NCBI GenBank assembly: GCA_021613535.1
Contig: CP075494.1
Location: forward strand, 2,790,001-2,854,000
Direction: 5' to 3'
DNA from: Adineta vaga
Taxonomy: Eukaryota; Animalia; Rotifera
DNA length: 64,000 nt
The notes below the pieces were generated by a model. That model was not told where the DNA came from. It searched no databases and saw only the letters and a list, made by a program, of their open reading frames with translations. Each line of letters opens with the position of its first letter. The stretch's first letter is position 1. Of this stretch, positions 23,440 through 43,871 are shown piece by piece. The position numbers and the translations under genes are program-made.

Positions 23440-24083
23440 TAAATATTTTTTATTGTAAAAATAAAATCAATGCTTTTAAAAAACAAAGGTTCAATTTATT
23501 AATGAAAAGAAATCAGCAGACTGAAGGAAATTCATTGAAAGCAATCTTTTTGTGATATTTGAAAGATTTAAATGAATACTATTAGGGAAAAATTTCTTGA
23601 GACTAAACAATTTCATAGTATATTTTTGTATCGTTAAAAGAAATAATATATATTCTCTTTCTCGTAGAGAAGAGTCCAGTAAACATTAATTGTCTGCTTG
23701 CTTGCTTGTATGTCTGCAGGGTCAAAAAAACATCGAAAATCGATTTTTCGGAAAAGACATTTCCAGAGGTATATCGATGCGGAGACTTCGAATCTGATGT
23801 TAGTTTTTTAAAATTTTTATAGAAAAAAATATTTTCTTTAATGTCTGGTGATGTAATAAGTAGTATTTTATTTTGCGAAATGAATTTTGAAGTGACGTCC
23901 ATTTACCTGACAACAAGACTGAGCTTCTTCCAGGTCTTTTACCTTTGATACCAAACATGCCTGTACTTCTTACTGATAATATCGCGTGTGAACTCGGATT
24001 ATCAAACGGTACTCAAGGAATTTTTCTAGAGCTCATATACGATGATCAAGAGAATTTAAATAATTTCAAAATTAATAGCGATG

Positions 24084-25647
24084 ATGTAGATGAAGTTGGC
24101 CACGGATTCGACTTTTTCTTAATAATATTCACCTGAGAAGGTGTGCCACCTGTCCTTTGTCGTGTGCCAGGTAGATCTCGATGAGCTCTATCCAAAAGTA
24201 TGATTACATTTTGTAACAACTTCACACAGTTGTCTACAGTCGTCAAAATGTATTTTTTCTCCATGGGGACAATTTCACAAAAATCATATTTCTTGAAAAT
24301 ATTCGCTCCCTTACTCTGCAACTCACAACAAATCATATATTTCGATGCATCTCGACGTGCTCTATCGAATGGTGTGTACCATTGCATCGTGTAAACAATA
24401 ATTTCAATGAAAATCGCCTAAAACCATCAAAAATCACCATTTTACCACATATTTCCTATATATATTCATTTCGCAATGTGTGCCACATCTAAAACCGATT
24501 TCATTCGACTCAGCGTGAAAAACTGGATCGAATGATGTATCATTGAATACATTTGAAATCATAAAATGGACCTAGAAGTTTTTCAAAACCTTTCATGTAC
24601 ATACCAATATCACTTATCCAACTTATAATTCACATATATAGATATATTCGATATAAACTTGGAAATTTCATCAAATATGAAATACTTCTATTATCTTCAA
24701 TAAAATTCTTTGTTAATTGTAATTGATAATTAGTATGGGAATGTACTAAACCATACCAGAAGGTGTTTAGAGCAATAAGTATTGAATCTTAGGTTCATGG
24801 CAGTTTTTCTTTTAGTATGTGTCAACGTTTGTATATGCATAAATATATTTCATTCAACGAATTTCATTTAGCTCTATCGATTAATATATCATACATCTAT
24901 ATTATTCATATTCTTTAAGTACTCATCCCTCAAAGCTTTCACCTGTGCATCTATGGTCTGGAGAAATAAAACTACATATTCATTGTAACACATGTGCCAG
25001 AACTGAAGCATGTACCATTCGATAGATCTCAGTTTGGCCTGTTGAATGAAGTATAATTCAGCCGTATTGGTATTACTTTTCTGGTAAAAAAATTTCAAAA
25101 ATGATCTAATGTGCTTGTTACAATGAATATACCTTCTCGATTCGTATTCAAATATGTGCCAATGTCAAAACATATGCCATTCGATAGATCTTAACTAGTT
25201 CTATCGAATGAGATACAATTCAGTATTATGTATTACCTTTTTAACTATGAAATCCGAATAATTCAATAAGGATATTTTCTGTCAGGCATCAATCTTATAT
25301 ATTGATGATAGGATATGTGCCAACGGTAATACATACAGCAATCAATAGCTCTACTTTAGTTCTATCAAATCAAATATAGATGAATGTTATTTGTATCATA
25401 TTTTCAATCTTTACTACGTACAAAATACAACCGCAGTGCTCGTGTGAAGAAATTGTATTTCCCTATTCACTGTCACACGTGTGCCACGGCCCGGATAGAT
25501 ACCATTTGACAGATTACTACTGTTAAAGCCATCGAGTGATATATAACTCAGTGTTATATATGATATCTTTGATCAGCAGCATTTGAAAAAGATAACAAAT
25601 ATCTTTCATATCAACTGTTTGCATTCCTGATTCGTATTCAAATATGT
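24084..25647 (+). repeat. Left TIR (1,564 bp)
   Basis: Reverse complement of 35880-37443. Paired coordinates sum to 61527 wherever checked, e.g. identical mirror ORFs 24889..25098 and 36429..36638. Confidence 0.92.
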
Positions 25648-27110
25648 TCCAATGTTCATATGAGTACCATTCGATATATCTCGTTTATTCCTAACAAACG
25701 AGGTATAATTAAATATTATGTGCATTATCTTTTTAACTGTTCTACTTTTCAGGTAAGAAATATGTATTTATTATCAAAATTTATACAAAGATTTACTTTC
25801 AGGCACATACTATGTTTGAAACACATACACTATCGATCCATCTCACGTAGTTCTGTCGAATGAAGCGTAATTCAACGTGAGTCATATCGCTTTTTCACCT
25901 ATATTATCTCAAAACGATGACAGATTGGCTTGCTGTTATGAGCTTAATTCATAGATTCATCTTGACAAACATGCCAGCAATTGTACGTATATTATCTCAT
26001 AGATTTCATTGAGCTCTATCAAATAACATATATTTTTACACTAGCTCTGTTAACTTTTGATCGATTGCATGCAAAGAAAACAATATGTATGTTTCCCATC
26101 GAGACATTACTTTATCAATTGATCTTCAAATATGTGCCAAGGTGCAGAGATCTGTCATTGAATAGATCTCACTCAGTTCAATTGAATGAGGTATGATTCA
26201 CGGTAGTCTGTGTTACTTTTCGGCATGAAATGTACCCGAAACTTCAATAATTGTGTTTGTACTTGAGTTTCTCTTCCAGATTCATATAAGAGTATGTGCC
26301 AATGTTGAAATACGCATCAGTCGATAGGTTTCATTCAGTTCCACTGAAAGAGGTATAATTTATTTATATATGTACAACTTTTGAAACGATATATTGTGAA
26401 AAACTCATTAGATACGAGTGCTATTAGACATTTTACTCCTAAAAATTCGTTTTTACATTTGTGCCAAAGTTGAAACATATGCCAATTGATAGATCTTAGT
26501 CTTCTGCATTGTATGAGCTGTGATTGAGGGTTGTCTGCATTGTCGTTTTAGCAATAGCACCTCAAAAACTGAACACATATACTTGATATCGAGTATTTAC
26601 TCTTTTTTTTATTCATGTTAACGTATTTGCCAAAATTGACACATACATCGCTGGATAGATCTCGGTTTGTTCTATTAAATGAGGTATATTTTAGTCTTGT
26701 TGGTGTTACTTTTTGGATGGTAATATATAAAAAATACACTATGTATTAATTTTAACTAGAATATGCATTCGAGATTTCTGTAAAAGTATGTGCCAAGACT
26801 AATATCTTTACTATTCGATAGATTCCATCCATCTCTATTCAAAAAGGTATTATTAAATGTTATTTGTTTTGTTTTTCAGCAATAATATTCCAAAAACTCA
26901 ATATGTGTGCTAATTATCGACGATTTATCTTTATTTTATTGAATTTCAGTGATGCGCCAATGTTGATACATATACTGATTGATAGTGCTTGTCTGTATCT
27001 GTCGAATGAGCTATAAATAAATGTTTGTTTAATCACCTTTGGAACTATGGCATACCGAGAAATGGACAAGGTTAACTGCAATGAAATTGTGAAATGTGAA
27101 TAGTTTTATT
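24140..27110 (+). repeat. Left-arm degenerate tandem array, ~163-bp period
   Basis: TGTGCC(A) recurs at ~24993, 25155, 25315, 25480, 25643, 25970, 26131, 26294, 26460, 26626, 26789 and 26952. Each is followed by a CATTCGATAGATCTC...TTCTATCGAATG-type palindrome. Confidence 0.85.
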
Positions 27111-27724
27111 TCATCAGAAAAGTTTTGAGCTACATACTCATTTAAAAAGATATGTCATTGATGAATTGCATTTTATCTGACGAATATCATTGAGTTGTGT
27201 AAATAATATATAGTATATCATTATCTTAACTATCTAGAAATATTGTTATGGGTAAAATGGAATTGATGAATACTCAACAGAAATATCAGATGTATTTTGG
27301 TTTGATTGAACAGGTATAAATTGTTATTGAAAGTATAAGCTACAGATTAATCCGAAAAGCTGTACTAATGATCAAATAAATATAATTAAAAGGATTTCAG
27401 CTAATTCTATTTGTCGGATAGAAACCTTATTTTATTAAAAAAAGAGTTTACGACAAGATACAACTCATTAATGATAACTTAGGTACAAACGTGTGTCATT
27501 ATATATTTAATAAAAAATCATAATATTATAGATTTGAATGGTCTGTAATATCAATTAAATTATTTCTTTTATTAGTTTGTTCTTTCCTTGCATTTTTTGT
27601 TACCTAATCCAGTATGGAAGATATATATTTCATTTCACACGTGTCTTTTATCAACAACGTTGAATATTTGTTATGAGAAAAATTTGAATTTCTTCAATAG
27701 ACGTTGCACGTGACACGTTGTATG

Positions 27725-27744
27725 TATATATATATATATATATA
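27725..27744. repeat. (TA)n microsatellite upstream of the transposase
   Basis: About 10 TA units. Confidence 0.8.
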
Positions 27745-28120
27745 GGTAAATACGTTATATAAATTTTCAAATAAGATTATAACGATCATATGCTTGATGA
27801 AAGAAGGTTTATTCATTACTTAAAAAGATGATATTAGAATCGAATTATTAATTTATTTTTATTATAAAATATAAAAAAGAAAATGATAGTATTTTTATCT
27901 AATTTTAAAGTCGAAAATCTTATTATCTTTTACAAAAATATTCAAAAGGTAGATAATTATGAATTATTGATATCTATTGAAAATATTATTCATTGTTTTT
28001 ATCTCGTTTTAGATTAGTACATAGCATTATCTGTCAGGAAGAAACTGATATTATTTATCTGCTAGATTATTGAGCTATATATGTTGGATTAATATAGCTT
28101 TTTTTATCTTCATTTTAGAT

Positions 28121-31100
28121 ATGAAACGAACATTGAAATCCAAGTATTCTGGTTCATATAGTCAAAATGTAAGCGGCAAGAAGCGTGGTAAAACCAGCAT
28201 TCCTTTGGATGAATTAATTACTGCTGTGTCACATCTTGGTAAAAAATTATCTAAACTGGATAATGATAAACAATGGCGTGCATTTACCTCTTTATGGTCT
28301 CAATTAGCTAATGATTTAGCTACTCGTCTACCAATTAAGAATGATCTTCGTATTCGAAAATACATTTATGCTACATGGCATCGCGAATCATCAAATCTTC
28401 GATCTCATTTTATCAAAGATCCATTACCAAATAGTAAAAAAACTAATCTAGAAGAACTTCCATCAACACCAAGCTTGACAAAAATGTGTACACGATCAAA
28501 AAGCGGTAGCAAATCAAGTACAAATATCGACACGAATAAAAGTCAACAACATTTAATTGAATTTTCTTATGAAGAATGGCAAAATGTATGTTTTAATAAT
28601 TAATATCTTTACAAGAAAATTCATCATTTAAGTTTCTAATAATAATTCGTTCTTTTTAGATTTACAAAAAAGAAGCTAAATCTCACTCTATGGATTCCTC
28701 ATGGAGTGATAAATTTTATGATAAATTAGTCTCTTCGAAATTAATTACTTGCAGTATTGTTTTTGATGACTCAAGACTTCGCCAATTATACACACGAAAA
28801 GTGAATAGTCCTTTATTCAAATGTCATGCCTGTTGTTCAAATTCGACTTGTCCATTGACTGTAAAAATTAATATGCTAAAATTGGCTTTACCTGGTGAAT
28901 CAGTCGTTTTTCGAGTGAAAATTATCGGTACTCCACGACATGATGATCCATTAGAGATTAATCAACGTCCATTGACAGGTGCCAAACGAGTACAAATGGG
29001 TAAGTTATCTTGCTATTTTGATTTAATAAATAGTCTTTGTCGCATTCTGTTTTGTTTAGCTAAAATGGCAAAAGAACATGGGATTTTAGCAACATACGAA
29101 AAGAATCTACTCAATGCCGATGATGATCTTCTAAAGTGCAATAATTATACTGGAGTGCATACTACACACGTGATTGCAAGAGCTGTAAAAGAACAATCCG
29201 ACAACTTGTGCCTTCATAAAGAGTTGCTCGTTGAATTGCAAATGATGTTGTTTTCTATGAGAGAATCAGATCAAACTTCTAGTATACAAAATAAAGGTAT
29301 GTTTTATTCTAATATGTATTTAATATGTTTTATTCTTCGACTATGATATGTATTTAGGTTATATACAAGTTCTTCAATTATGGCCTTTTGCTACAATATT
29401 TTTTACTGAAGCACAATTACTTCAATATATCGAATATTGTTCATCGACAAAAGATTCGTATATCTATATTGATGCAACTGGTTCCATCGTCAAACAAATA
29501 CCTAAACAACGAAAACCTTATTTATATCTTATCTGTTTTAAAGATGGCCCAGGTGCTTGTAATTTATTACCTCTAGCTGGTGCGTTATTAACGGATCATT
29601 CAGCTGCATCTATTGGTAATTGGCTATCAATTGTTCGTCGAGGTATTGCAGCTGTTAAGAACGGTCGATTTATTCGACCGAGTTACATTGTTATTGATTT
29701 TTCGCCAGCATTATTAAATGCTGTATTGTTGAGTATTAATCAAACAAATATTCAAACTTATTTACAATGGTGTTTTAATGTAATCAAAAAGAAATATACA
29801 AAGGATCAATTAAACTTAGTATCGTGCATACGATTTTGCTGTGCTCATGTAATGAATGCTTTTGCACGATCTTTATCAAAATTGAATCTTAGAAAAAATG
29901 TTCGAAAAAAAGTTATGATGGTTTTTGGTATTTTACTCAATTGCAATGAATTTAATCAATGCTACGATCTGATTGTTCTTATTGTATGGATATTTGGATC
30001 AAATGAACTGGAAAAAACCGAAGAAGCACTTGATGAAATTATCCAAGTAATAGGATACATATACACAAATATTATTTCGCACATCGATTCTCATTTTAGG
30101 TTGGTGCTGATTATTTACCTGAATTTGCAGAATTTCTTGAAGATGATAATCTTACAAATGCTGAAAGTTTAATCGAACATGAATTAGCTGAATTAGATGA
30201 CATTTTTTTGTCATCACAACCGATTCTACATCAATCAGCATTTACAAGATTGGCTCGTGAACGATCACCATTATTATCCAACATTATGGATGAACCAAAA
30301 AAAAAGAAACAACAACAAATAAAAAATCCATTATTTTCTAAAGAATTAGTTAAGGTTTTTTATAAATGGATTGCTTATTTACCACTTTTTACTGGATTAA
30401 TGTATCAATTTCAAGACCGGTAGGAAAATTTCATTTAATAAACTTTTTCTTAAATTGATTAATAATAATAGATATGCATCTGATGCTGATATTGATATGA
30501 ATTCAAAAACATTAACAAGTGGTCGCGTTTCGAATGCACCAATTGAATCTTTCTTCAAGATATTAAAACATTCTATTCTTCGGCATCAAACAAATCTTCG
30601 ACCAGGTGAATTCCTGTTGTACTTATATTCAACAACAAATGCTCGAATTAAAGCAAATCAATTTAATATTCAACAAACAGGATCAAAAAAACGTGGTCGA
30701 CGGAAAAAACAGCAAATTGATCAAATTGATTCAACCATGCTTATGGAACAATGGAAGAAACGAGGTACCGAAGTTGCAACTCGTGGTGTTTATTTTTCTA
30801 AATATGTTGAACAAAAATTATTACCAAATGATATTCGAAGTCGTCTACGAGAAAAACTTCAGTAAGTTTAAATTTCTTTAATAAGGTGCAATTGAATGCA
30901 TAATATTATTTGTATATAGAATGAGAAAAGATCGATTAGATGATGTTGAAGATAATGATGATATGCCAAACATTCCAGCAATGGATGCACCATCCGAAAT
31001 GTAAGTCAAGTTTTGTATTGCACCTTTGTATAGATTGAATATCTATCTTTGTCATAAAGAATGTATTCTATAGATCTGTTCGCATTTTATTTGTTTTATC

Positions 31101-32765
31101 TTCAAATATCTCTTTGTCTTTGAATTCTATTCCCGTTGCAATATGTATTCGAGAGAGATAAAAGCGTATTTTTTTTGAAAAAAAACATTCTTGTTGTCTT
31201 ATCAGTTCGTAAACTATTTGTCTTTCATTTAAGGTATTCTACGAAACCGGATGAAAATGTTGAAGTCGAAGAGATTCCAGAACCAATCGAACATGTTGAA
31301 ATTGAAGAAGTTCCGAAACCACTTGAAAATATTGTAATTGAAGAAATTTCGACACCTGTGGAAATTATTGAATATCAAGATGTTCCGAAACCAATTCAAG
31401 AATTAAATGTAAATACAAATTCAAAAATACCTATTCTTTGTAATGAAGGTCAAAAACTTAAGTCTGTTACTGATAGTGGTATTAGTTCGCAATCAAAACT
31501 TGATGCATTATGTGAAAAAGATTCTAACCTGAAGGAATATGTAAAAAAAATGTCACAAAAAACACGTCGTATTCATGGTAATAACGATAAGTTTATTGGA
31601 TTTTGTGAACGAAAAAATTTGCCGACATATACATTGATTGGAAATTTGAAATTACGTTTTCCACATTTCAATATTCCACCAACTTTTATTAATGCCACCT
31701 GTCAATATTCTGCTATAAATACATGCTCGTTGGATTCTTCATTATTTTTACTTTATTACATCTATATGTCACGTTCAGAACAATTTCGCTCTTTATTTAA
31801 TTCCGACATTCCAGTTTGTCTGCGATTACGGCAAACGTTTGATCTCGTCGAAAAAAAAGGATGGGATTTTCCAAGAGTGTATTGGATTACAACTAATGGA
31901 AATTATTCAAATCAAGAAGCTGGTTATTCACAAATTGATTTACATGGAACTGCTGATACCAATGTTTTTCAATATGTCAGAGAAATTCAAAAGTATGTTA
32001 TTAAATCAACCTGTACGTGTACAGAGTGTCCAAAATTGGTGCGACAAACTCATTCTGTCGATATCAGTTTACCGTAAGCTCTTCTATATTATTCTCTTTG
32101 TGATAGCTAATCAATTCTAACTTTTTAAGACAATTAAGTGGCCGTAATCGACGCATCATCAATTTAACGAGTTTTTCTGAACAATCTATTACAGATTGTC
32201 AATCTACAATTGGTCCTGATGAGCCAACATCGTACAATGGATCATATGCTCGAGATGATTTCTTTCCAGCTAAGAATGGTAAAGGTACCAGGTAAATATA
32301 GCTAGTCGATTTGAGAAAAAATATCTCCCTGATACCTTGTGAATTAGAACTATGTATGTATGTAATTCCAATCGAATTGCTGAACCGAATCAATTTGTTT
32401 ATAAATCACCACCAATTATAATTCTAAATGTTGGCCGAAGTGTAACTAATAATGAGAAAAATACAATAGTAACAATATCGGTTAAAAATTTACCGTATGT
32501 AATTGTTATTGGGAAACAACGGTGAGTCTCATGATTATATAATTATAATTTCCAAAAAAAACTAATATTTGTTTTTAGTTATAATCTAGCTGGAGCAATT
32601 TGTCCAGGAGCCGATCACTTTACTGCTACCATTGTTTATGCTAAAGGTCGATTTGCAAAATACGATGATCTAAATAAATTCGGCGTAAAAACCAATGAAG
32701 GTGGCGATGACTTTGTCGAAACAGCTGTCTATGCCATTGAAATGAACAATGATGAAGATGACTAG
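28121..32765 (+). CDS. MULE-type DDE transposase fused to a C-terminal USP-fold (peptidase C19/C98-like) cysteine protease, 11 exons, ~1,294 aa
   Basis: Exons 28121-28585, 28660-28999, 29060-29296, 29358-30046, 30100-30419, 30472-30861, 30920-31000, 31234-32073, 32130-32291, 32348-32521 and 32579-32765 splice in frame with no stop. Transposase motifs YIDATG / VIDFS / CCAH / NAPIESFF; protease motifs NTCSLDS, YNLAGAICPGADHFTA, KYDDL. Confidence 0.88.
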
Positions 32766-33149
32766 AATTTGTCTTTATTATTTGTCAACATATCTGTTTC
32801 TTCACTAGTCAGATAATTTCTTTTTTTTAAATTGTTATCTTATTATTTTTACTTGTACATATTTGTTGATCATGTAGTTATGCAAGAGCATATGCTATTG
32901 CATGTATATATAGATGATTTATAGGTGTGTTATACTGCATATTAAGAAACGTACGATATTAGTATTGGAACATCTTATTTTATCTCTATGTTCATAAGGT
33001 TAAGTGAAGGCTTTGATTCTTTTCTATCATTCGTTTTTCATGATTCTTCAATCATTTAAAATTGTTACTATTTTTCTTTCTTGAAACGTTCAATCTTTCA
33101 ATAAAAAATGGACAACAAATAAACATATCTATCTTTTTTAGGCAATGTT

Positions 33150-36100
33150 GATGCAAAAACTCAGACAGCTACTAGAATTTATACATGAGAAAAGATGACT
33201 CAATAAAACCTATCGAATGAATTATAAGTAGCTAGTTATGGCATATATTTGAGTATAAATCTATCAAATACATAGTTGCTCAAGAACATATTTCCTGAGA
33301 CTTTAAAATGTTATTGTTAAAACAGCAACATGGATAATACTGATATATATATGTCATTGATAGAATTAAGTGAGAATTATTCAATAGTGAACGTTTCAAT
33401 GTTGACACAAACGAGAAAGTCCCTAAAATAGGTAAATACTCGATAATAGTAACCTCTATTGAGTTTTTCAGTACATGCGACACAAAAAATAATATCGAAA
33501 ACATTGAATTAAACATCGCCTGATGGGGGATAGTGAGATCTATCAAATCGTATATGTATTAACACTGGCACATCCTTTAGTAGGAATCTAGAAGGTGGAC
33601 TCTTTAATACAAGCACTTTTGTTATATTTTCGACATGTTTTGTATCAAAAACTCAAACAAACATCAATCAATTATATACCATTCGATAGAATGGAATGAG
33701 ATCTACCGGATAGCAGATGTATCAGCATTGGCACACGCGTTTACATGAACCTGTAAGGTAAATTCTTAAAAAGTATGCACACATATTGAACATTTCAGAT
33801 GTTAGCATCCAAAAAGTGACATCAATAAGGTTCAGTGATACCTTCTTCGATAGAACTAAGTGAGATCTATCGATTAGTGAACGTTTCACCGCTGGCACAT
33901 ATATCAATATGAATAAAAAAAGGTAAATAGTCAATAAACAACTTCACCTGTTGAGTTTTTCAGGTCCTTTCATACAAAATATAATACGGAAAATGTTGAA
34001 TTATACATCATTCGATAGAGAGCAATAAGATCTATCGGATGGTATGTGTATTAGTCCTGGCATATATTTCAACACGAATTGTGAAGCTTCAACGTTGCTG
34101 ACAACCACACCTATGGAGTTTTCAAGATAATAATGCATGGAAAACAATACATATAGCAATAGATTGTGTTTCATTTGAAAGAGCAAAGCGAGATCTGCCA
34201 ATCGATGTACATATCGGCGTTGGCACAAAGGCATACACGAATGCAGAAAGTAGATCCTCAATAAAAAGCGCATTTGTATCGGTTTTACGATTCCATGAGT
34301 CAAATATTAGCACAGAAACTGTTCAATAAGATATCTTTCGATAGAGAAAGCTGAGATCTATCGATTGGTTTGAATAGCAGCATTGGCACAATTTTTAATA
34401 TGAATCCATACGGGAAATTCTCGATAAACAATAAATTTGTTGAGTTTTACACATATTTCAGACCGAAAAGTAACAGAGATTACCTTGAGCGATATCTCGT
34501 TTGATAGAACCAAGTGAGATCTATCGAATGATATATATTTGAATCTTGGCACACACATCAAACCGAATGTGTAAATGGAATTCTCGATAATATGCACATC
34601 TATTGAATTGTTCATCTACTAAACCTCGCAGAAAAAGAGATAATTATAAATGAATTTATACATGAATGTGTAGAACTTAATAAGTTTTATCAATTGCTGC
34701 ATATGCCAGCACTGGCACATACATGAACACGATATATCAAGGTAGATGCTTAATAACAGACACACCTGTTCAGTTTTTTTATGTATCGGTTCGAAAGATG
34801 ATATCAATAGAACTGATTTATATCTCGTTCGATAGAACTAAATAAGCTGCATCGAATAGTATATATATCAGGCATGGCACATATTGCAAAATGAATCCAT
34901 CATTAAAACTTCGGATGAGAAACATATGAGTCAAATCTTAGAGGAACATATCTGATGGAGTTTTACAAATGATAGGATGCTATTGTTAATACAACTAATA
35001 ATAAACTATATCTTATTTCATAGAATCAAATAAGACCTTTGCATTTATGCACTTACGCACGTTGGCATATACTTAAATATGAAATGCAAAGGTAACTATT
35101 TGGCAAAGCACCTGTTGTGTATTTCCCACTAAATATATGAAACGAGTAGAGACGTGTCACTAACTTATACTTAATTTTATCGAGCCAAATGAAATCTATC
35201 GAATGGTGCATGTTTCGACCTTGGCACATTCGTGAAAAAGAAATAATGATAACAACTCACAACAACAAATACTGCTCTTGTGTTTTTTCAACTATCAAAA
35301 TTGAAAAGGTGATACATATCTAGGTAAATTGTATCACATTTGATACAACTCAATATGATATATTAAATAGAGTATGTAACAACCTTGGCACATATTTGAA
35401 TATTAATCTGAAAGGTAGATTTTCAATAATTGTGCATATCATCTAATATTTTCACATTATTAAAGAAGAAAGAAACAACATGAAAGGCATTGAAATATAT
35501 CTCATTCGATAGAACAAGACGAGATCTGTTGAATGGTGTACGAATTAATCTTGGCACACATTTGAACACGAATCGAACAGGTAGATGATTGACAACAAGC
35601 ACATGTGTTGGGCATTTACATGTTATGGTCAAAATGAGAACATATTTGTACGTGAATTGTATTTTGATTGATAGAGCAGAGTGAGATCTAGCGAATGGTA
35701 TGCGTATCAGCTTTGGCACACGTTTCAGCATGAATTATGAAAATATATCTTGAGTATCAAGTACATGTGTAAGGTATCTGAGTATCTGTGGTTAAAATAT
35801 GACAAAGATAATACTGAATTGTATCTCATTCGATAGAACTAGTTAAGATCTATCGAATGGTATATGTTTTGACATTGGCACATATTTGAATACGAATCAG
35901 GAATGCAAACAGTTGATATGAAAGATATTTGTTATCTTTTTCAAATGCTGCTGATCAAAGATATCATATATAACACTGAGTTATATATCACTCGATGGCT
36001 TTAACAGTAGTAATCTGTCAAATGGTATCTATCCGGGCCGTGGCACACGTGTGACAGTGAATAGGGAAATACAATTTCTTCACACGAGCACTGCGGTTGT

Positions 36101-37390
36101 ATTTTGTACGTAGTAAAGATTGAAAATATGATACAAATAACATTCATCTATATTTGATTTGATAGAACTAAAGTAGAGCTATTGATTGCTGTATGTATTA
36201 CCGTTGGCACATATCCTATCATCAATATATAAGATTGATGCCTGACAGAAAATATCCTTATTGAATTATTCGGATTTCATAGTTAAAAAGGTAATACATA
36301 ATACTGAATTGTATCTCATTCGATAGAACTAGTTAAGATCTATCGAATGGCATATGTTTTGACATTGGCACATATTTGAATACGAATCGAGAAGGTATAT
36401 TCATTGTAACAAGCACATTAGATCATTTTTGAAATTTTTTTACCAGAAAAGTAATACCAATACGGCTGAATTATACTTCATTCAACAGGCCAAACTGAGA
36501 TCTATCGAATGGTACATGCTTCAGTTCTGGCACATGTGTTACAATGAATATGTAGTTTTATTTCTCCAGACCATAGATGCACAGGTGAAAGCTTTGAGGG
36601 ATGAGTACTTAAAGAATATGAATAATATAGATGTATGATATATTAATCGATAGAGCTAAATGAAATTCGTTGAATGAAATATATTTATGCATATACAAAC
36701 GTTGACACATACTAAAAGAAAAACTGCCATGAACCTAAGATTCAATACTTATTGCTCTAAACACCTTCTGGTATGGTTTAGTACATTCCCATACTAATTA
36801 TCAATTACAATTAACAAAGAATTTTATTGAAGATAATAGAAGTATTTCATATTTGATGAAATTTCCAAGTTTATATCGAATATATCTATATATGTGAATT
36901 ATAAGTTGGATAAGTGATATTGGTATGTACATGAAAGGTTTTGAAAAACTTCTAGGTCCATTTTATGATTTCAAATGTATTCAATGATACATCATTCGAT
37001 CCAGTTTTTCACGCTGAGTCGAATGAAATCGGTTTTAGATGTGGCACACATTGCGAAATGAATATATATAGGAAATATGTGGTAAAATGGTGATTTTTGA
37101 TGGTTTTAGGCGATTTTCATTGAAATTATTGTTTACACGATGCAATGGTACACACCATTCGATAGAGCACGTCGAGATGCATCGAAATATATGATTTGTT
37201 GTGAGTTGCAGAGTAAGGGAGCGAATATTTTCAAGAAATATGATTTTTGTGAAATTGTCCCCATGGAGAAAAAATACATTTTGACGACTGTAGACAACTG
37301 TGTGAAGTTGTTACAAAATGTAATCATACTTTTGGATAGAGCTCATCGAGATCTACCTGGCACACGACAAAGGACAGGTGGCACACCTTC
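33150..37390 (-). repeat. Right-arm degenerate tandem array, ~163-bp period (longer than the left arm)
   Basis: TGGCACA recurs at ~33566, 33728, 33892, 34057, 34220, 34383, 34546, 34712, 34875, 35221, 35384, 35551, 35713, 35875, 36041, 36204, 36365 and 36527. Confidence 0.85.
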
Positions 37391-37443
37391 TCAGGTGAAT
37401 ATTATTAAGAAAAAGTCGAATCCGTGGCCAACTTCATCTACAT
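35880..37443 (-). repeat. Right TIR (1,564 bp)
   Basis: Reverse complement of 24084-25647. Confidence 0.92.
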
Positions 37444-38951
37444 ATAGCGATGTATTTCCATAAAATACAGTCTATATAAGAAAACCATTGCACGTGCTTA
37501 GAGAAATCAACACATCGCAAGTAGAAAAAACTCTCGAAGATCTTCCTCCCAAAGTAATTCCTATTCCAATGATAACAAAACAATTTAATATCCCTATCAA
37601 GGAACTCTTCGGTCGACTGATTGAACATGTACAAAATGGAAAAAGAATTTCAGAAACAATTCAAGTTACAAGAAAGCAGTTACCAATCGTTCCTGCCTAC
37701 GCAATAACTACATATAAGGCGCAAGGACTCACAATGAACAAAATTGTCGTCGACCTTCAAGTTCCACTTGGAACGATGCAAGTGGCATCCGTCTATGTAC
37801 CACTCAGTAGAGTAAAGAGAGCGGAGGATGTGGCTATTCTTCGGCCTTTCGACACGAAGGTGCTGCAAATTCGATCCTCTCTTGTTCAAGACGCTGAACT
37901 GAAACGTCTAGATGAACTCGACAGAAAGACAAAGCAATAGTGTACCTCTTTCATTTTTTGAACGTGTATAAAGCGATAGTTGGCTAAGAGTCTAACGTTA
38001 TTGCAACCATACAAAGCGTATTATTATTTGAAATTACCTTAAAATAATTATTCAGATATGTTCATTTACTTTACCTCTCTATTTACAGTTATGCTAATTA
38101 TGGTATAATTGTCTCTTTTCTCTCATTGTATTAGATAGTTCCTATCTTGTTTTCTTGATTTCGCTTTTAGATATAATTACTCATAATATTCCCAGTTATA
38201 ATGATACTTCTTCGGAATATCTTATCCTCTATTTAACATTTGGTATAAATATCTATTGCTAGTTTTGTGCAAATATCTAATCTATGCTGGAAATAAACTT
38301 ATATACACCATAATGCACCAAAAATATAACATCTGAAAGCAGTATTTCTACGAGAAAGAGCTAAGCGAGTCTATAAAGACGAGCTTTACTTGTTCAACTT
38401 TTCTTGTCTTTTTCAGGTGCCTTGTTTTCTGATTATGATAACGAAAATCTGAATTAAACTTTTCGAAATCATTTCTATATTTAAAATTCATTATTAGATT
38501 TTGATTTTTACGAAACAAATTCATAAACTCGTACTCATCGAATAGAAATCAATGATTTTCGCTTTAAAATTTAAAAATATTCAGAAGAGGTTCTACTAAA
38601 GAAAATTTTCATTTGAAAGGAAAAAGATACAAATTAATGCTCATGTCTAAAACTATCTCAAACAAATCAAGTCTATACAGTTGGTTTTGTCTTTTTCTTT
38701 CAAAACAACTCTTCAGTCACGAGTTCGATAATAAATATACTTTTAACTTTTTTTTTTGGTACTTTCAATTATCTCTAACGATGATCATCTCTTTTAATTT
38801 GTAAAATGACGAAGAAAAAAACAAAGAGTCGTATACTTCAAGTTATTAATGAAATCAAGTGAAAAATAAAATGAGAGAAGTTTCTTTCTCTTCATATTCA
38901 TTTTAACAAATTCTTGTCGACTAAAAAAATCTTATAATATAAGAAGAAGAA

Positions 38952-40111: not shown

Positions 40112-43100
40112 ACGTAGGATATCCTAGCTCCCGATTCGAGTTTTTCCTGGGCCGATTCGCCCATGAAAAGTTTCCAACTATGCTGACCAACTTTCCAAGT
40201 AGAACTCGATGAGCTCTACATTTTCGTTTTTGACACTTTTTCAGTCAGACCACTCCTTCCCACCCAAAAATGCAAAATACCGCAAAAAGTCGTGCAAAAA
40301 ATGTGAATTTCATGGTTTTTCCTGGGCCGATTCGCCCATGAAACGTTTCCAACTATACTGACCAACTTTCCAAGTAGAACTTGATGAGCTCTACAATTTC
40401 GTAATTGAAACTTTTTCAGTCAGACCCCTCCTTCCTGCCCAAAGTGCCAGAAACCACCCAAAATCCATGAAAACGTGAGTTTTTCCTGGGCCGATTCGCT
40501 CAAGAGCTTCTTCGAATGAAACAAACATTGTTTACAGGTAGATCTTGATTAGCACTATTGATTTCACATCTTATTTTTTAATCTCGAACGAGTTATCATC
40601 GAGAAAGAGGCTATTTAATGTTATCTTAGTTACAAACATATTCAGCTCCATCATTCATTGACTTGTTTGTATTGACCAATAGAAATAGAGCAATCAAAGA
40701 TGATCGATTTTTCCAAAAAATTTATTGTTACAAATTATCAAAATTATAATTACTGAGAAAAAAGTATTTTATTTTAATTTATTTATTTAATAGGACTATG
40801 AGAACAATATATGTGTGCATTTGATTAATTTCGAAACAATCAATCATTGTTCTCAACTAGCAGTGACATTCTGGAAAATCTTCTATTGGTCGATTTTTTA
40901 TAACGACTGAATTTACGAGAAAAGCAAGATAGCGGGATATATTGTGTAAAAGGAAGTTATTGAAGAAACAATATGGAAAAAAAATATTGCAATGAAAATA
41001 ACATTTTAAATTTATTTTTGAGAATTAAAATTAAAATTACAAATCTTTCGTTTTGGAAATTAGCAGAATGTTTTGATTTGATCTGTTCGATATCCAAAGA
41101 CTAAATATCTTGAACTTTATATTCAGAAATTTGAAAAAACAAATTTTTTGTTTCGTTATGATAAGACGTTTGATTGACTCTTATTCTTTAGCCTTCTCAG
41201 TTTTTGTTTAGTGACTCGAAAGAAGCCGATCATATTTATTTTTATCTCATAAATGAATCGGCGACTTGCAGAATTATATTTAATACCGAAAAGTAGAAGT
41301 GATGATGGCAAAGATAATACCTCCTCTCCTTTGACACTTACGATTAAAAGATAATATCATCGCTGTCTCTTGATGATCAAAAGTGAATGACTGATTGTGT
41401 TTGTTTATTGATAGTTGATGAAAGAATTTTGTTTTCTCTCTGAATTTCGTCATATGAATTTTTCGTATGAGAATATTGCACTTCTATTGGTCAACTAGAA
41501 TTAATTTTGAATAGCGAGGAAAGAATATCATTAATTTATTCTTAGTTGACAAAATCGGGCGGAAATATTTTTTTGTTTTATCATAACTTCTTCTTCTATC
41601 CTTAATCACACTACTTTTTTATTACATTTCAACTGTATCGGTATAATCAGATCATGGCTGGGAAAAAGGCAGGTAAAGAAGCTAAAAATAATATCTGGTC
41701 TCTTATTACTGTAGAACAATTGGCTACTGCTATTGCTTCTCTTGGAAATTGTATTAAGGGACTCGACAAAGAAACTTGGCGATTATCTACTCAAACTAAA
41801 TTATCAAATTCTCTCTGGGCTCAAGTTATTGAAAAATTAGGAATTAATCACAATGAAAAATATCGTCATTCGTTATACAATATATGGAATTCAAAGAATG
41901 ATACTACTAAACATTTAAAGCAAAGAATAAAAATGATAGTCATAAATGAAAATGACGATAAGACTAATACAACAGCAGATATTTCTCTTACAACGGAAGC
42001 TATTCCAAACTTACCACTTGCTCCATCATTATCGTTACCTCATAGGCTAGAAACACGTGCGAAACAATCGGAAAATGCTGATAATAATGCCACTAAAAAA
42101 TCAGTTATTGGTGAAGTATCATTTACTTTAACTGCAAGTCAATGGAAGGCTGCATTTAGCCAAACGCTTAAAAAAATGAACAAGGCGTAGACCAAAATAT
42201 TTTCTGTTAAGTTGGAGTCTTGTGGATTCAAATGTGCAGTAGCTTTCAGTAAAGCACACATAAGAAAAGGTAAACGAAAAACTACATCTAACTTTTTTTG
42301 GTGTCGTGCTAGGTGCACTAATAGCGACTGCACCAGATTATATGTTATTAGTCTTCGAAATCAACCGGATATCAATACATCTGCACTATTTCTCATGCGC
42401 ATTTATGGTACAGAAAATCATAATTCTGAAAAACAAACAATGGTATGTCAACTCGAGAGTGAGGAACGTTATCTTGTGGGTAAGTAACTGTAGTATTTAC
42501 TCTTAAAAGTTGTATTGTTATGACATATTTATTTTAGGAGAACGAGCAAATGAAATTGGTCCTTTAGCAGTATTTCGTGAACGTGTACAGGCGGCTGACG
42601 AAAATTTGCTCGCAGCAGGTAATCACACCAGCTGTGAAACAATTGAAGTAATCAAAAAAAACATCATCTGATTATCGTAAAAAATATCAAGTAGACGAAA
42701 ATATCTTCACCGCATGTCGTATTGTTGCTTCTGCTTATCGGAAAGCGGACATTACTTCTACCATTGTGAAAGGTAAACGAGTACTACACATGAGGATAAT
42801 ATATTATTAGTTTACTTTTTATTTTATTTTCTGCAGGATACATTCAAGTTATTGGCGAAATGCCATTCCGTGTACATCTATTCTCGGAGCCGCAAATTGA
42901 AAAATATGTCGACTATTGCAGAAGGGAGAAATATTCATACGTACATATTGATGCTAACGGCGACGTATTAAAACATATGACTGAACAGAACCAAACATTG
43001 CTTCATGCAATTGTTTTCAAAGGTGAAATAGATTGTACTCATACTGCTACACTTGCACATGCATTTCTTACAGATCATACGGTTCCTAGTATTAGTTACT

Positions 43101-43871
43101 TTTTGGGAAACTTAAATCATGAAATAACAGAATTCAAAAAGAAAACAGTTCTTCCTTCCTTTTTTGTAATTGATTTTTCAGCTGCCCTTATGAATTCAAT
43201 TTTTCAAGCATTCAATTTAGAAAACATTAATTCACATTTAACTCAATAGATGTGAAATCAATAGTGCTAATCAAGATCTATCTGTAAACAATGTTTGTTT
43301 CATTCGAAGAAGCTCTTGAGCGAATCGGCCCAGGAAAAACTCACGTTTTCATGGATTTTGGGTGGTTTCTGGCACTTTGGGCAGGAAGGAGGGGTCTGAC
43401 TGAAAAAGTGTCAAAGACGAAAATGTAGAGCTCATCAAGTTCTACTTGGAAAGTTGGTCAGCATAGTTGGAAACGTTTCATGGGCGAATCGGCCCAGGAA
43501 AAACTCACGTTTTCATGGATTTTGGGTGGTTTCTGGCACTTTGGGCAGGAAGGAGGGGTCTGACTGAAAAAGTGTCAAAGACGAAATTGTAGAGCTCATC
43601 AAGTTCTACTTGGAAAGTTGGTCAGCATAGTTGGAAACGTTTCATGGGCGAATCGGCCCAGAAAAAACCATGAAATTCACATTTTTTGCACGACTTTTTG
43701 CGGTATTTTGCATTTTTGGGTGGGAAGGAGTGGTCTGACTGAAAAAGTGTCAAAAACGAAAATGTAGAGCTCATCAAGTTCTACTTGGAAAGTTGGTCAG
43801 CATAGTTGGAAACCTTTCATGGGCGAATCGGCCCAGGAAAAACTCGAATCGGGAGCTAGGATATCCTACGT
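40112..43871 (+). mobile_element. 3,760-bp internally deleted Mutator-like foldback element related to 24084..37443
   Basis: 9-bp TSD ATTTTTCTA (40103-40111, 43872-43880). Termini ACGTAGGATATCCTAGCTCCCGATTCGAG and its reverse complement. TIRs 40112-40571 and 43248-43871; the right TIR has one extra 164-bp unit. Confidence 0.92.
41654..43249 (+). pseudogene. Truncated MULE transposase
   Basis: Homologous to 28121..32765 ('YVHIDANG', 'FVIDFSAALMNS', 'FFWCRARCTNSDC'). Premature TAG at 42188-42190 (Trp in the paralog), frameshift at the A-run ~42654-42661, and truncation at the inner edge of the right TIR before the catalytic Glu. Confidence 0.85.

Follow-up and report, generated by a model that had tools for sequence, protein, structure and literature searches.

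A single-copy DNA transposon of Adineta vaga encoding a Mutator-type transposase probably fused to a divergent USP-fold peptidase domain

The gene at positions 28121-32765 of the analysed stretch of Adineta vaga DNA raises the question of whether a transposon can carry, on its own transposase, an enzyme that removes ubiquitin or a related modifier. The stretch, called the window here, comprises 64,000 nucleotides of contig CP075494.1 (GCA_021613535.1) and corresponds to C5:2790001-2854000 of the genome assembly searched (100.8 Mb, six contigs). The window harbours a complete, single-copy DNA transposon at 24084-37443 (13,360 bp), with the gene in its middle. The encoded protein very probably consists of a Mutator-type transposase fused to a domain with the fold of ubiquitin-specific proteases (USPs). 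Taking the element, the fused protein and the role proposed for it together, we consider this the best explanation of the locus, and a likely one.

The locus had been described as a transposon in an initial annotation made from the sequence, and this description is borne out by inverted ends of 1,650 nt that are 98% complementary, by a perfect 9-bp target-site duplication, and by the presence of a single gene between them. The outer 400 nt of both inverted arms are 100% identical, and degenerate copies of the inverted repeat fill both arms (the left arm inward to about 27000), in a Foldback-like manner. Besides the exons and a few short open reading frames (ORFs) in the arms, no further ORF of at least 90 aa was found in the element. 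The element is present as a single copy with no derivative family, and no more than three distant relatives of its ends (72-81% identity) occur in the genome.

In bdelloid rotifers, transposons are kept at very low copy number. The genome of A. vaga possesses at least five diverged lineages of the family that combines a transposase with a USP-like domain, with one to three copies each and 30-40% mutual identity, at loci including C3:17633363-17635749, C1:15660380-15662943, C1:17829727-17832314, C3:2314389-2316757 and C5:16302913-16303431, plus others. Some of these paralogues carry stops, and others have lost the catalytic Cys (L007 reads NTY). The N-terminal ORF of one paralogue on contig 3 (L017) has the same sequence as the first ~280 residues of the A. 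vaga protein I4U23_016505 (P0078). The named relatives belong almost entirely to the bdelloid rotifer genera Rotaria and Adineta. A second, smaller element was found 2.7 kb downstream, at window positions 40112-43871; its inverted ends measure 394 nt and are 98% alike, and it is flanked by a 9-bp duplication (ATTTTTCTA). It encodes a truncated transposase (41651-43246) that lacks the USP part and resembles Rotaria proteins (59-74% identity) more than it does the large element nearby, and the termini of this smaller element share CGATTCGA(G/C)TTTTTC with those of the large element.

Eleven exons, separated by ten introns that are all GT..AG, were read from the sequence on the forward strand, and their coordinates were checked by script. 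A codon-by-codon walk along these coordinates gave a spliced frame of 3,885 nt from ATG to TAG with zero internal stops, that is 1,294 codons and the stop codon. The eleven GT-AG exons and the single stop-free frame of about 1,294 aa put forward in the initial annotation were thereby confirmed, and every motif it had named in the two domains was found at window coordinates (Table 1). Nine of the introns measure 52-74 nt and one, after exon 7, measures 233 nt; the G+C content is 32.7% in exons vs 24.2% in introns, and 25-36% in the window overall. Homology searches were run exon by exon. Exons 4, 5, 8, 10 and 11 align colinearly with homologues, as do, by eye, exons 1-3 and 6. The homologues cross the junction of exons 2 and 3 without the 20 residues that read-through of intron 2 would insert, which supports this junction. 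Skipping of exon 7 or exon 9 would preserve the frame, and both therefore remain candidate exons. Tandem Repeats Finder detected a 36-bp tandem repeat in exon 8 (31253-31393, 3.9 copies, 73% matches), which encodes an acidic linker rich in Pro, Glu and Ile that joins the transposase to the USP-like domain. In contigs of a related strain (95-99% alike), nine substitutions and an indel were counted in the 56 nt of intron 9, and 11 substitutions in the 174 nt of exon 10; the run of this strain gave over the gene only unspliced DNA pieces, with zero splice joints.

Table 1. Coordinates of the transposon ends and of the exons of its gene in the window.
Feature	Position	Strand	Remarks
Left target-site duplication	24075-24083		9 bp, ATAGCGATG; read directly; identical to 37444-37452
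Left terminal inverted repeat	24084-25733	+	1,650 nt, 98% complementary to 35794-37443
Exon 1	28121-28585	+	Start codon, N-terminal domain; IPLDELITAVSHLG, by eye like IGLDQFVAAVASLG of rotifer relatives
Exon 2	28660-28999	+	Cys/His zinc-finger-like block at ~28816-28941, C-x4-C then His
Exon 3	29060-29296	+	Junction with exon 2 backed by gap-free colinearity with P0076 and P0078
Exon 4	29358-30046	+	Transposase catalytic core; D 29471-29473, D 29696-29698, CxxH 29837-29848
Exon 5	30100-30419	+	Helical insertion domain of the transposase; tblastn with P0034, 41% identity
Exon 6	30472-30861	+	Catalytic E (IESFF, 30545-30547), basic tail
Exon 7	30920-31000	+	Acidic linker; candidate 81-nt exon, its only support GT-AG sites and an open frame
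Exon 8	31234-32073	+	Linker, then first half of the USP-like domain from ~31637
Exon 9	32130-32291	+	Fingers region; candidate 162-nt exon, with an open frame and GT-AG sites; poorly aligned to homologues
Exon 10	32348-32521	+	Fourth zinc-ribbon Cys (YVCN), PPIIILNV strand
Exon 11	32579-32765	+	His box (His 32616-32618), Asp box (Asp 32664-32666), stop codon
Right terminal inverted repeat	35794-37443	-	Partner of the left repeat; degenerate copies inward from ~33400
Right target-site duplication	37444-37452		9 bp, ATAGCGATG; read on the reverse complement

The first part of the protein had been assigned a catalytic core of the MULE (Mutator-like element) type, and this assignment was corroborated by its invariant residues, by weak Pfam MULE matches in three homologues and by the predicted structure of the core. 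The core alignment A3, drawn from rotifers and metagenomes, shows no variation at the first D (DATG), second D (DFS), CxxH motif or E (ESFF/ESYF). Yuan and Wessler reportedly described in 2011 that a C/DxxH motif following the second D is a signature of Mutator transposases. Exon 4 is 37-41% identical to rotifer homologues, and the A3 core profile matches exon 6 at E 3.4e-12 (C5:2820455-2820817). The matches of the three homologues to Pfam MULE lie at the right place and are sub-threshold, with E-values of 0.009-0.036 and 15-17 bits vs a cut-off of 27.6. In a comparison of exon 4 by language-model features, MULE accounted for 25 of its 30 nearest named clusters. The Cys/His finger upstream of the core shows by eye the same C-x4-C...H pattern in P0076 and P0080; it has no Pfam match, and the type of finger is putative.

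The predicted model of the transposase core of the rotifer protein P0075 (residues 95-520) reached a predicted local distance difference test score (pLDDT) of 72.8. Its closest match in the ESM Atlas was an unnamed arthropod cluster (template modelling score, TM, 0.70), the second was the cluster '120.7 kDa protein in NOF-FB transposable element' (TM 0.60 by query, 286 residues, root-mean-square deviation 3.3), and six MULE clusters followed (TM 0.49-0.54). Among PDB structures, the best match was the IS256-family transposase ISCth4 (E 1.8e-4), with RAG1, Hermes and the P element behind. With moderate confidence, the core as modelled is nearer to Mutator and IS256 than to other transposases with an RNase H fold. 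Because of these structure matches, the 9-bp duplication and the long inverted ends, the element is assigned to a broadly defined Mutator superfamily, closest to its NOF-FB/Rehavkus side and with Foldback-style ends.

The C-terminal part of the protein was characterised through its relatives. In exon 8, the codon of the catalytic Cys (NTC) lies at 31724-31726, and the first zinc-ribbon Cys pair, C-x4-C, at 32012-32029. Among 1.84 billion representative proteins, phmmer, queried with the informative part of exon 8, revealed 71 relatives at E <= 0.001, mostly exon-sized fragments; the longer relatives that reach the His box include P0032 and P0034 from Rotaria, and P0059 from the clam Mactra antiquata. 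The Cys of NTCxxD (C34) is nearly invariant in a 36-row alignment (A2). A wider alignment (A1) contains the C-x4-C pair, a second Cys pair and the PPIIIxN strand, and all of its rows reaching the C-terminal half possess the His box as YxLxAxI...HF(T/A)A and the Asp box as YxYD(D/N). Within the zinc ribbon, C-x4-C is nearly invariant and the Cys of WxC(N/D) is conserved, and a candidate third Cys is located in the poorly aligned exon 9.

An AlphaFold2 model of residues 343-660 of P0034 (Rotaria magnacalcarata), built on the 36-row alignment, reached a pLDDT of 87.8 and a predicted TM score of 0.83. Foldseek against the PDB gave 443 matches at E <= 0.001, of which the top 50 were all USPs (E 4e-11 to 8e-9). 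VIA-align superposed 212-250 residues across model residues 3-318 at Z scores of 13-14.8, and gave 470 chains at Z >= 8; its top 50 rows were all USP-fold chains, including USP30, USP35, USPL1, USP1, CYLD, USP46, USP18 and USP7 within ~1.5 Z. Giant-virus UCHs and coronavirus PLpro regions were the best viral structure matches of the domain. Among its 30 nearest named clusters by language-model features, 11 were Pfam UCH. An hhalign comparison with three host USPs of this genome found the PPIII, His-box and Asp-box motifs in order (pairwise E 0.016), pairing the PPIIILNV strand with LPxVLIIQLKRF, HFTA with GHYxA, and YIYD with WYxFDD of the host USPs.

In the model of P0034, C34 opens a helix (34-49), H276 opens a strand (276-282), and D292 stands 16 residues further on. 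BLASTP aligned exon 8 with the folded homologue at E 1e-17, placing NTC on C34, and aligned exon 10 with residues 207-232 of P0034 (E 2e-6) and exon 11 with residues 264-312 (E 1e-5). The structure prediction and Foldseek search that had been suggested for the C-terminal domain thus returned USPs on top when run on the homologue P0034, and the USP-type tail with the order Cys-His-Asp claimed for this gene holds for the homologue by fold, structure matches and motif order, with the window residues mapping onto it. PF00443 matched the six-frame translated genome 113 times, never inside the window element. The domain is invisible to Pfam UCH, UCH_1 and C98, and therefore its membership in family C19 rests on fold and motif order, not on a profile. 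A USP-fold cysteine peptidase domain that has diverged past the reach of Pfam is the assignment supported by the modelled fold. Reading the tail as an Ulp1/C48 peptidase was ruled out by the Cys-His-Asp order, by the absence of PF02902 matches on the exons and by the absence of C48 among the top structures. The structures of USPL1, at Z 13.7-14.0, are tied with USP30, USP35, USP1 and CYLD, and no Pfam Peptidase_C98 match was found; since these five lie within ~1 Z, none of the USP subfamilies is singled out and the substrate cannot be read from the fold.

The claimed fusion of the transposase to a protease finds its counterpart in an intronless metagenomic family that holds both parts in one ORF. 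Its member P0080 is a 1,477-residue ORF on a metagenomic scaffold (L032, 5,783 bp), whose single uninterrupted frame contains finger, D-D-E core and USP-like domain. Eleven relatives of P0080 (814-1,721 residues) have the same order in one ORF, and nine of them span the whole 761-residue query. The intronless family (P0080, P0098-P0109) comes from metagenomic eukaryotes, and the short contig L032 shows no inverted ends. Two of its members, P0103 and P0106, possess an extra C-terminal Macro domain (PF01661, 35-36 bits), and the tail of P0080 contains, by eye, an IFDGNHRL motif recalling ParB-like domains.

Similar to the window gene, the rotifer gene models P0075 and P0076 have the domains in the same order, and at four paralogous loci of the genome the core and the tail lie 1.5-2 kb apart on the same strand. 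In the clam Mactra antiquata, the gene model P0059 (529 aa; L033, gene 8001-12810) has the C-terminal E motif of the transposase as ESWFNIVK and, behind it, a USP-like domain of more canonical appearance with the motifs NTCTIDN ... HKENHYAAV ... WYDGL. The clam protein carries both the E motif and the USP-like domain, and the fusion therefore exists outside rotifers. As judged from these predicted proteins, the fusion is conserved in rotifers, a clam and metagenomic eukaryotes. A further locus of the A. vaga genome (L031, C1:534000-543000, minus strand) encodes a diverged transposase of the same family, which the core profile A3 matches at E 2.4e-19 and 1.1e-8. Its downstream ORFs match Pfam UCH (66.5 bits; NNCWFNS, GHYYT...WYKLDDD) and Peptidase_C48 (36.8 bits). 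No inverted ends were detected within the 9 kb examined at this locus, and an hhalign comparison of the USP-like profile with the UCH ORF of L031 alone was not significant (E 0.21). Because L031 has a UCH domain visible to Pfam, the lineage carries USP-type domains, of which one branch is still recognisable by profile.

Descent from KDZ/Zisupton elements was considered for the PF18758 match on P0077 and was ruled out, as the KDZ piece is not homologous to the core of the family. In P0077 itself (Rotaria socialis, 446 aa), the only homologue with a KDZ match, an N-terminal KDZ fragment (PF18758, 29 bits) is joined to a USP-like domain sharing 95-98% identity with that of P0034; a nested insertion or a chimeric gene prediction is the probable cause.

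The ratio of non-synonymous to synonymous substitution rates (dN/dS) across copies, a check suggested with the first description of the domain, was calculated for the first half of the USP-like domain and ranged from 0.19 to 0.55 in unsaturated copy pairs. The value was 0.19 for L011/L012, 0.36-0.41 for L002 vs L008 and L009, and 0.55 for L004/L007, of which L007 has lost the Cys. In all deep copy pairs, the proportion of non-synonymous differences (pN 0.35-0.52) was well below that of synonymous differences (pS 0.64-0.85). The peptidase half thus shows signs of purifying selection among the copies. Relative to the related strain, 14 synonymous and 13 non-synonymous coding differences were found among the 40 listed of 74 differences.

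A complex was also predicted between the folded homologue and the ubiquitin unit encoded by the genome itself (L034:1495-1722); it scored 0.41 vs 0.13 for the best control. Of 78 solved complexes, 51 passed the mark applied, as did 2 of 108 mismatched pairs; at scores of 0.60 or less, only 5 of the 78 solved complexes passed, and all four of the passing mismatches fell there. The runs agreed in at least 46% of their contacts, and the pLDDT of the partner was at least 76. This pass lends weak support to ubiquitin binding, and may echo the likeness of the model to solved USP-ubiquitin complexes. We lean towards the prediction that the domain is an active isopeptidase.

A specific protective role of the domain for the element is more doubtful, and it is proposed because of the analogy with the discussion of the VTD domain of Helitrons (PMC9741609). 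The transposase presumably moves the element by cut-and-paste, and the tethered USP domain would remove ubiquitin, which is favoured, or a ubiquitin-like modifier of the SUMO, NEDD8 or ISG15 type, which is also possible. In the proposed role, its target would be the transposase itself, or host proteins and chromatin at the element. Removal of the modifier would shield the transposase from degradation, or would oppose a host restraint that depends on the modifier.

Several results weigh against the reading of this locus as a mobile element whose Mutator-type transposase ends in a working USP-fold domain. Pfam searches on every exon found no match to any family, and searches that also covered paralogue ORFs and 36 family members gave nothing for UCH, UCH_1, C98, C48, MULE or PHD. 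Pfam MULE (PF10551) at its curated cut-off gave no match on the window exons or on the paralogue L017, and a genome scan with it misses the family. In an hhalign comparison of the core alignment with one bona fide MULE of the genome, the regions of the second D were paired at an E-value of 0.24, which is not significant. UCH, UCH_1 and C98 could not be detected in any of the 36 members of A2 even at E <= 10, nor did the profile of the C-terminal family match any PDB sequence even at E <= 10. The folded protein P0034 is only ~30% identical to exon 8 of the window, and the fold is that of the homologue, not the window's own. The score of the ubiquitin complex cannot separate ubiquitin from SUMO, NEDD8 or ISG15. 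The lengths of exon 7 (81 nt) and exon 9 (162 nt) are divisible by three, and no homologue clearly supports either exon. None of the listed runs that are recorded as RNA contains this stretch, and three putative RNA runs gave no contig over 28000-32900, which bears on expression, on splicing and on the fusion as a single transcript. With a single copy and three distant relatives of its ends, recent mobility of the element is unsupported.

The alternative that survives best, although we judge it unlikely, is that the window copy is enzymatically dead. It would then be a pseudo-enzyme that binds ubiquitin or a ubiquitin-like modifier, or a silent, decaying relic whose frame is open as the insertion is young. 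The RNA runs examined, which gave no coverage of the gene, would suit such a copy, as would the single-copy state without derivatives, the loss of the Cys (NTY in L007) or the stops in some paralogues, and the divergence of the sequence past Pfam recognition. Nonetheless, the Cys, the His, the Asp and the four zinc-ribbon Cys (the third being a candidate in the window) are kept in the window and in its rotifer, clam and metagenomic relatives. The dN/dS values below 1 between copies, the roughly half of listed coding differences from the related strain that are synonymous, and the 11 of 11 open exons with all splice sites intact also argue against a dead copy.

The domain may instead serve mainly as a self-processing protease, similar to PLpro or to picornavirus leader proteases, that frees the transposase or itself, with deconjugation as a secondary activity; this we regard as improbable. 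Coronavirus ORF1a regions do appear among its structure matches (E 5e-6 to 2e-4), a cluster of leader proteases (Peptidase_C28) is among its feature neighbours, and the domain is tethered via a long low-complexity linker. However, cellular and giant-virus deubiquitinases match with lower E-values than the polyprotein proteases, and the putative zinc-ribbon fingers, which hold ubiquitin in USPs, appear to be retained. Exons 1-10 contain zero Gly-Gly, and the linker is therefore without an LxGG-type site, which is a mild argument against self-processing. The predicted complex with ubiquitin, which passed weakly (0.41 vs 0.13), likewise counts against self-processing.

A lower probability still is given to the fusion being an artefact of the gene model, in which exons 1-6 and exons 8-11 would be two genes in one element, like mudrA and mudrB of MuDR. 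The twelve intronless relatives that hold both parts in one ORF stand against two genes, as does exon 6, whose frame stays open up to a good GT donor. Two genes would fit the atypical and unsupported exon 7 with its following intron of 233 nt, the absence of transcripts over the gene in the RNA runs examined, and the domains of L031, which appear as separate ORFs in the six-frame view. However, the frame is kept with or without exon 7, and the USP part is not started by any ATG-initiated ORF with an upstream region of its own, the ORF at 31136 beginning with TTG inside an intron. That the gene is a domesticated host gene of transposase origin rather than part of a mobile element, as its single copy, many introns, intact frame and signs of purifying selection could suggest, has next to no probability and is ruled out by its position exactly between 1,650-nt, 98% inverted ends with a perfect 9-bp duplication, with the truncated relative 2.7 kb downstream, which has its own inverted ends and 9-bp duplication, and the at least five diverged low-copy lineages of the family in the genome also standing against it.

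The fusion of a Mutator-type transposase with a USP-fold domain, which we prefer for the window gene, is new in a limited sense. Deconjugases borne by transposons are already known, namely Ulp1 in MULEs and NOF elements, and OTU, VTD and UCH in Helitron-like elements. The search of the literature found no description of a USP-fold domain on a DDE or Mutator-type transposase; Repbase Reports lay outside this search, and the absence is not proof. The novelty is smaller than was first supposed, because UCH, OTU and VTD occur in Helitron-like elements, and Peptidase_C48 in NOF-FB-type proteins. The initial annotation had cautioned that a similar tail may exist in FB-NOF-type proteins; these proteins often carry a peptidase of the C48 type, not of the USP fold. 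The USP class has hitherto been reported only on rolling-circle Helitron-like elements, while Mutator-type elements are known for Ulp1. Here, the USP-fold domain is predicted to be covalently joined to a cut-and-paste DDE transposase, and it is unseen by standard annotation.

Erasers of modifiers that are carried by transposons suggest that hosts restrain transposases, or the chromatin near them, via such marks. The domain of ~370 residues with a predicted catalytic Cys is a defined and easily expressed object for testing which modifier a transposon must erase, and the rotifer element, with its complete gene and perfect ends, is a convenient system for the same question. Furthermore, searches at the level of the fold recover accessory enzymes of transposons that profile libraries miss.

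The eraser cassettes seen in this lineage are a USP-like domain alone (window), UCH with Ulp1 (L031), and a USP-like domain with Macro (P0103, P0106). It is a speculative and rather unlikely extension that the lineage carries interchangeable 'modification-eraser' cassettes against host control by ubiquitin, SUMO or ADP-ribose, and that the USP-like domain shares a direct origin with the chordate protein C14orf28. If the shared origin were true, vertebrate C14orf28, an orphan human gene, would be a domesticated part of a transposon.

The likeness to C14orf28 arose from the ESM Atlas, whose own model of P0034 had as its top cluster the chordate 'Chromosome 14 open reading frame 28' (TM 0.69 / 0.66, 261 residues), with canonical USP clusters behind it (TM 0.54-0.60). 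C14orf28 (DRIP1) is reported to have a papain-like deubiquitinase domain together with a second, fingers-like domain (PMC10318531). The search with the family profile gave no sequence link to C14orf28 or to any named non-rotifer protein. The structural likeness of the models may reflect shared ancestry or domestication, and is a lead only. Compared with cellular USPs and USPL1 (C19/C98), the domain shares the fold (Z 13-14.8), the succession from Cys box through putative zinc-ribbon fingers and His box to Asp box, and the spacing of 16 residues between His and Asp. It differs from them in lacking any match to the UCH, UCH_1 and Peptidase_C98 profiles, and in four short extra N-terminal beta-strands before the Cys box in the P0034 model.

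Among mobile elements, Helentrons possess OTU and VTD domains, and deubiquitinase activity was demonstrated for VTD (PMC9741609). The HLE2 Helitron-like elements include Pfam UCH and Peptidase_C48 as stable domains (PMC11417382). Similar to the window element, Helitron-like elements thus encode deubiquitinase domains fused to, or adjoining, the transposition protein. However, their transposition protein is a rolling-circle RepHel and not a DDE cut-and-paste transposase, and their UCH domains are recognisable by Pfam, unlike that of the window.

Among named structural matches of the transposase core, the NOF-FB/Rehavkus elements rank first (TM 0.60); they likewise have one large ORF with a C-terminal, modifier-removing peptidase module. 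The window element also resembles Rehavkus in the 9-bp target duplication and in the long inverted ends with internal repeats (PMC6446971). The Rehavkus group is further described as having a transposase with a PHD finger, and as possessing a minisatellite before the 3' inverted end (PMC6446971). In the window element, no PHD match was found on the exons, and Tandem Repeats Finder gave no array before the 3' end at a score >= 80. In the ESM Atlas cluster of NOF-FB, Peptidase_C48, with the order His-Asp-Cys, is present in 45% of the members and a PHD finger in 34%. In contrast, the window protein has a USP-fold Cys-His-Asp domain and no C48 match on its exons. Unlike the window gene, L031 of the same genome possesses both UCH and C48.

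Plant MULEs of the KAONASHI type carry Ulp1-like proteases, which are generally seen as a captured host gene and are often located in a separate ORF. The window element shares with them that it is an element of the Mutator superfamily with a cysteine peptidase of the ubiquitin-like-modifier system. The KAONASHI peptidase belongs to the C48 clan and fold, whereas the predicted peptidase of the window has the fold of USPs and forms the C-terminal domain of the transposase, in an arrangement that is conserved across phyla.

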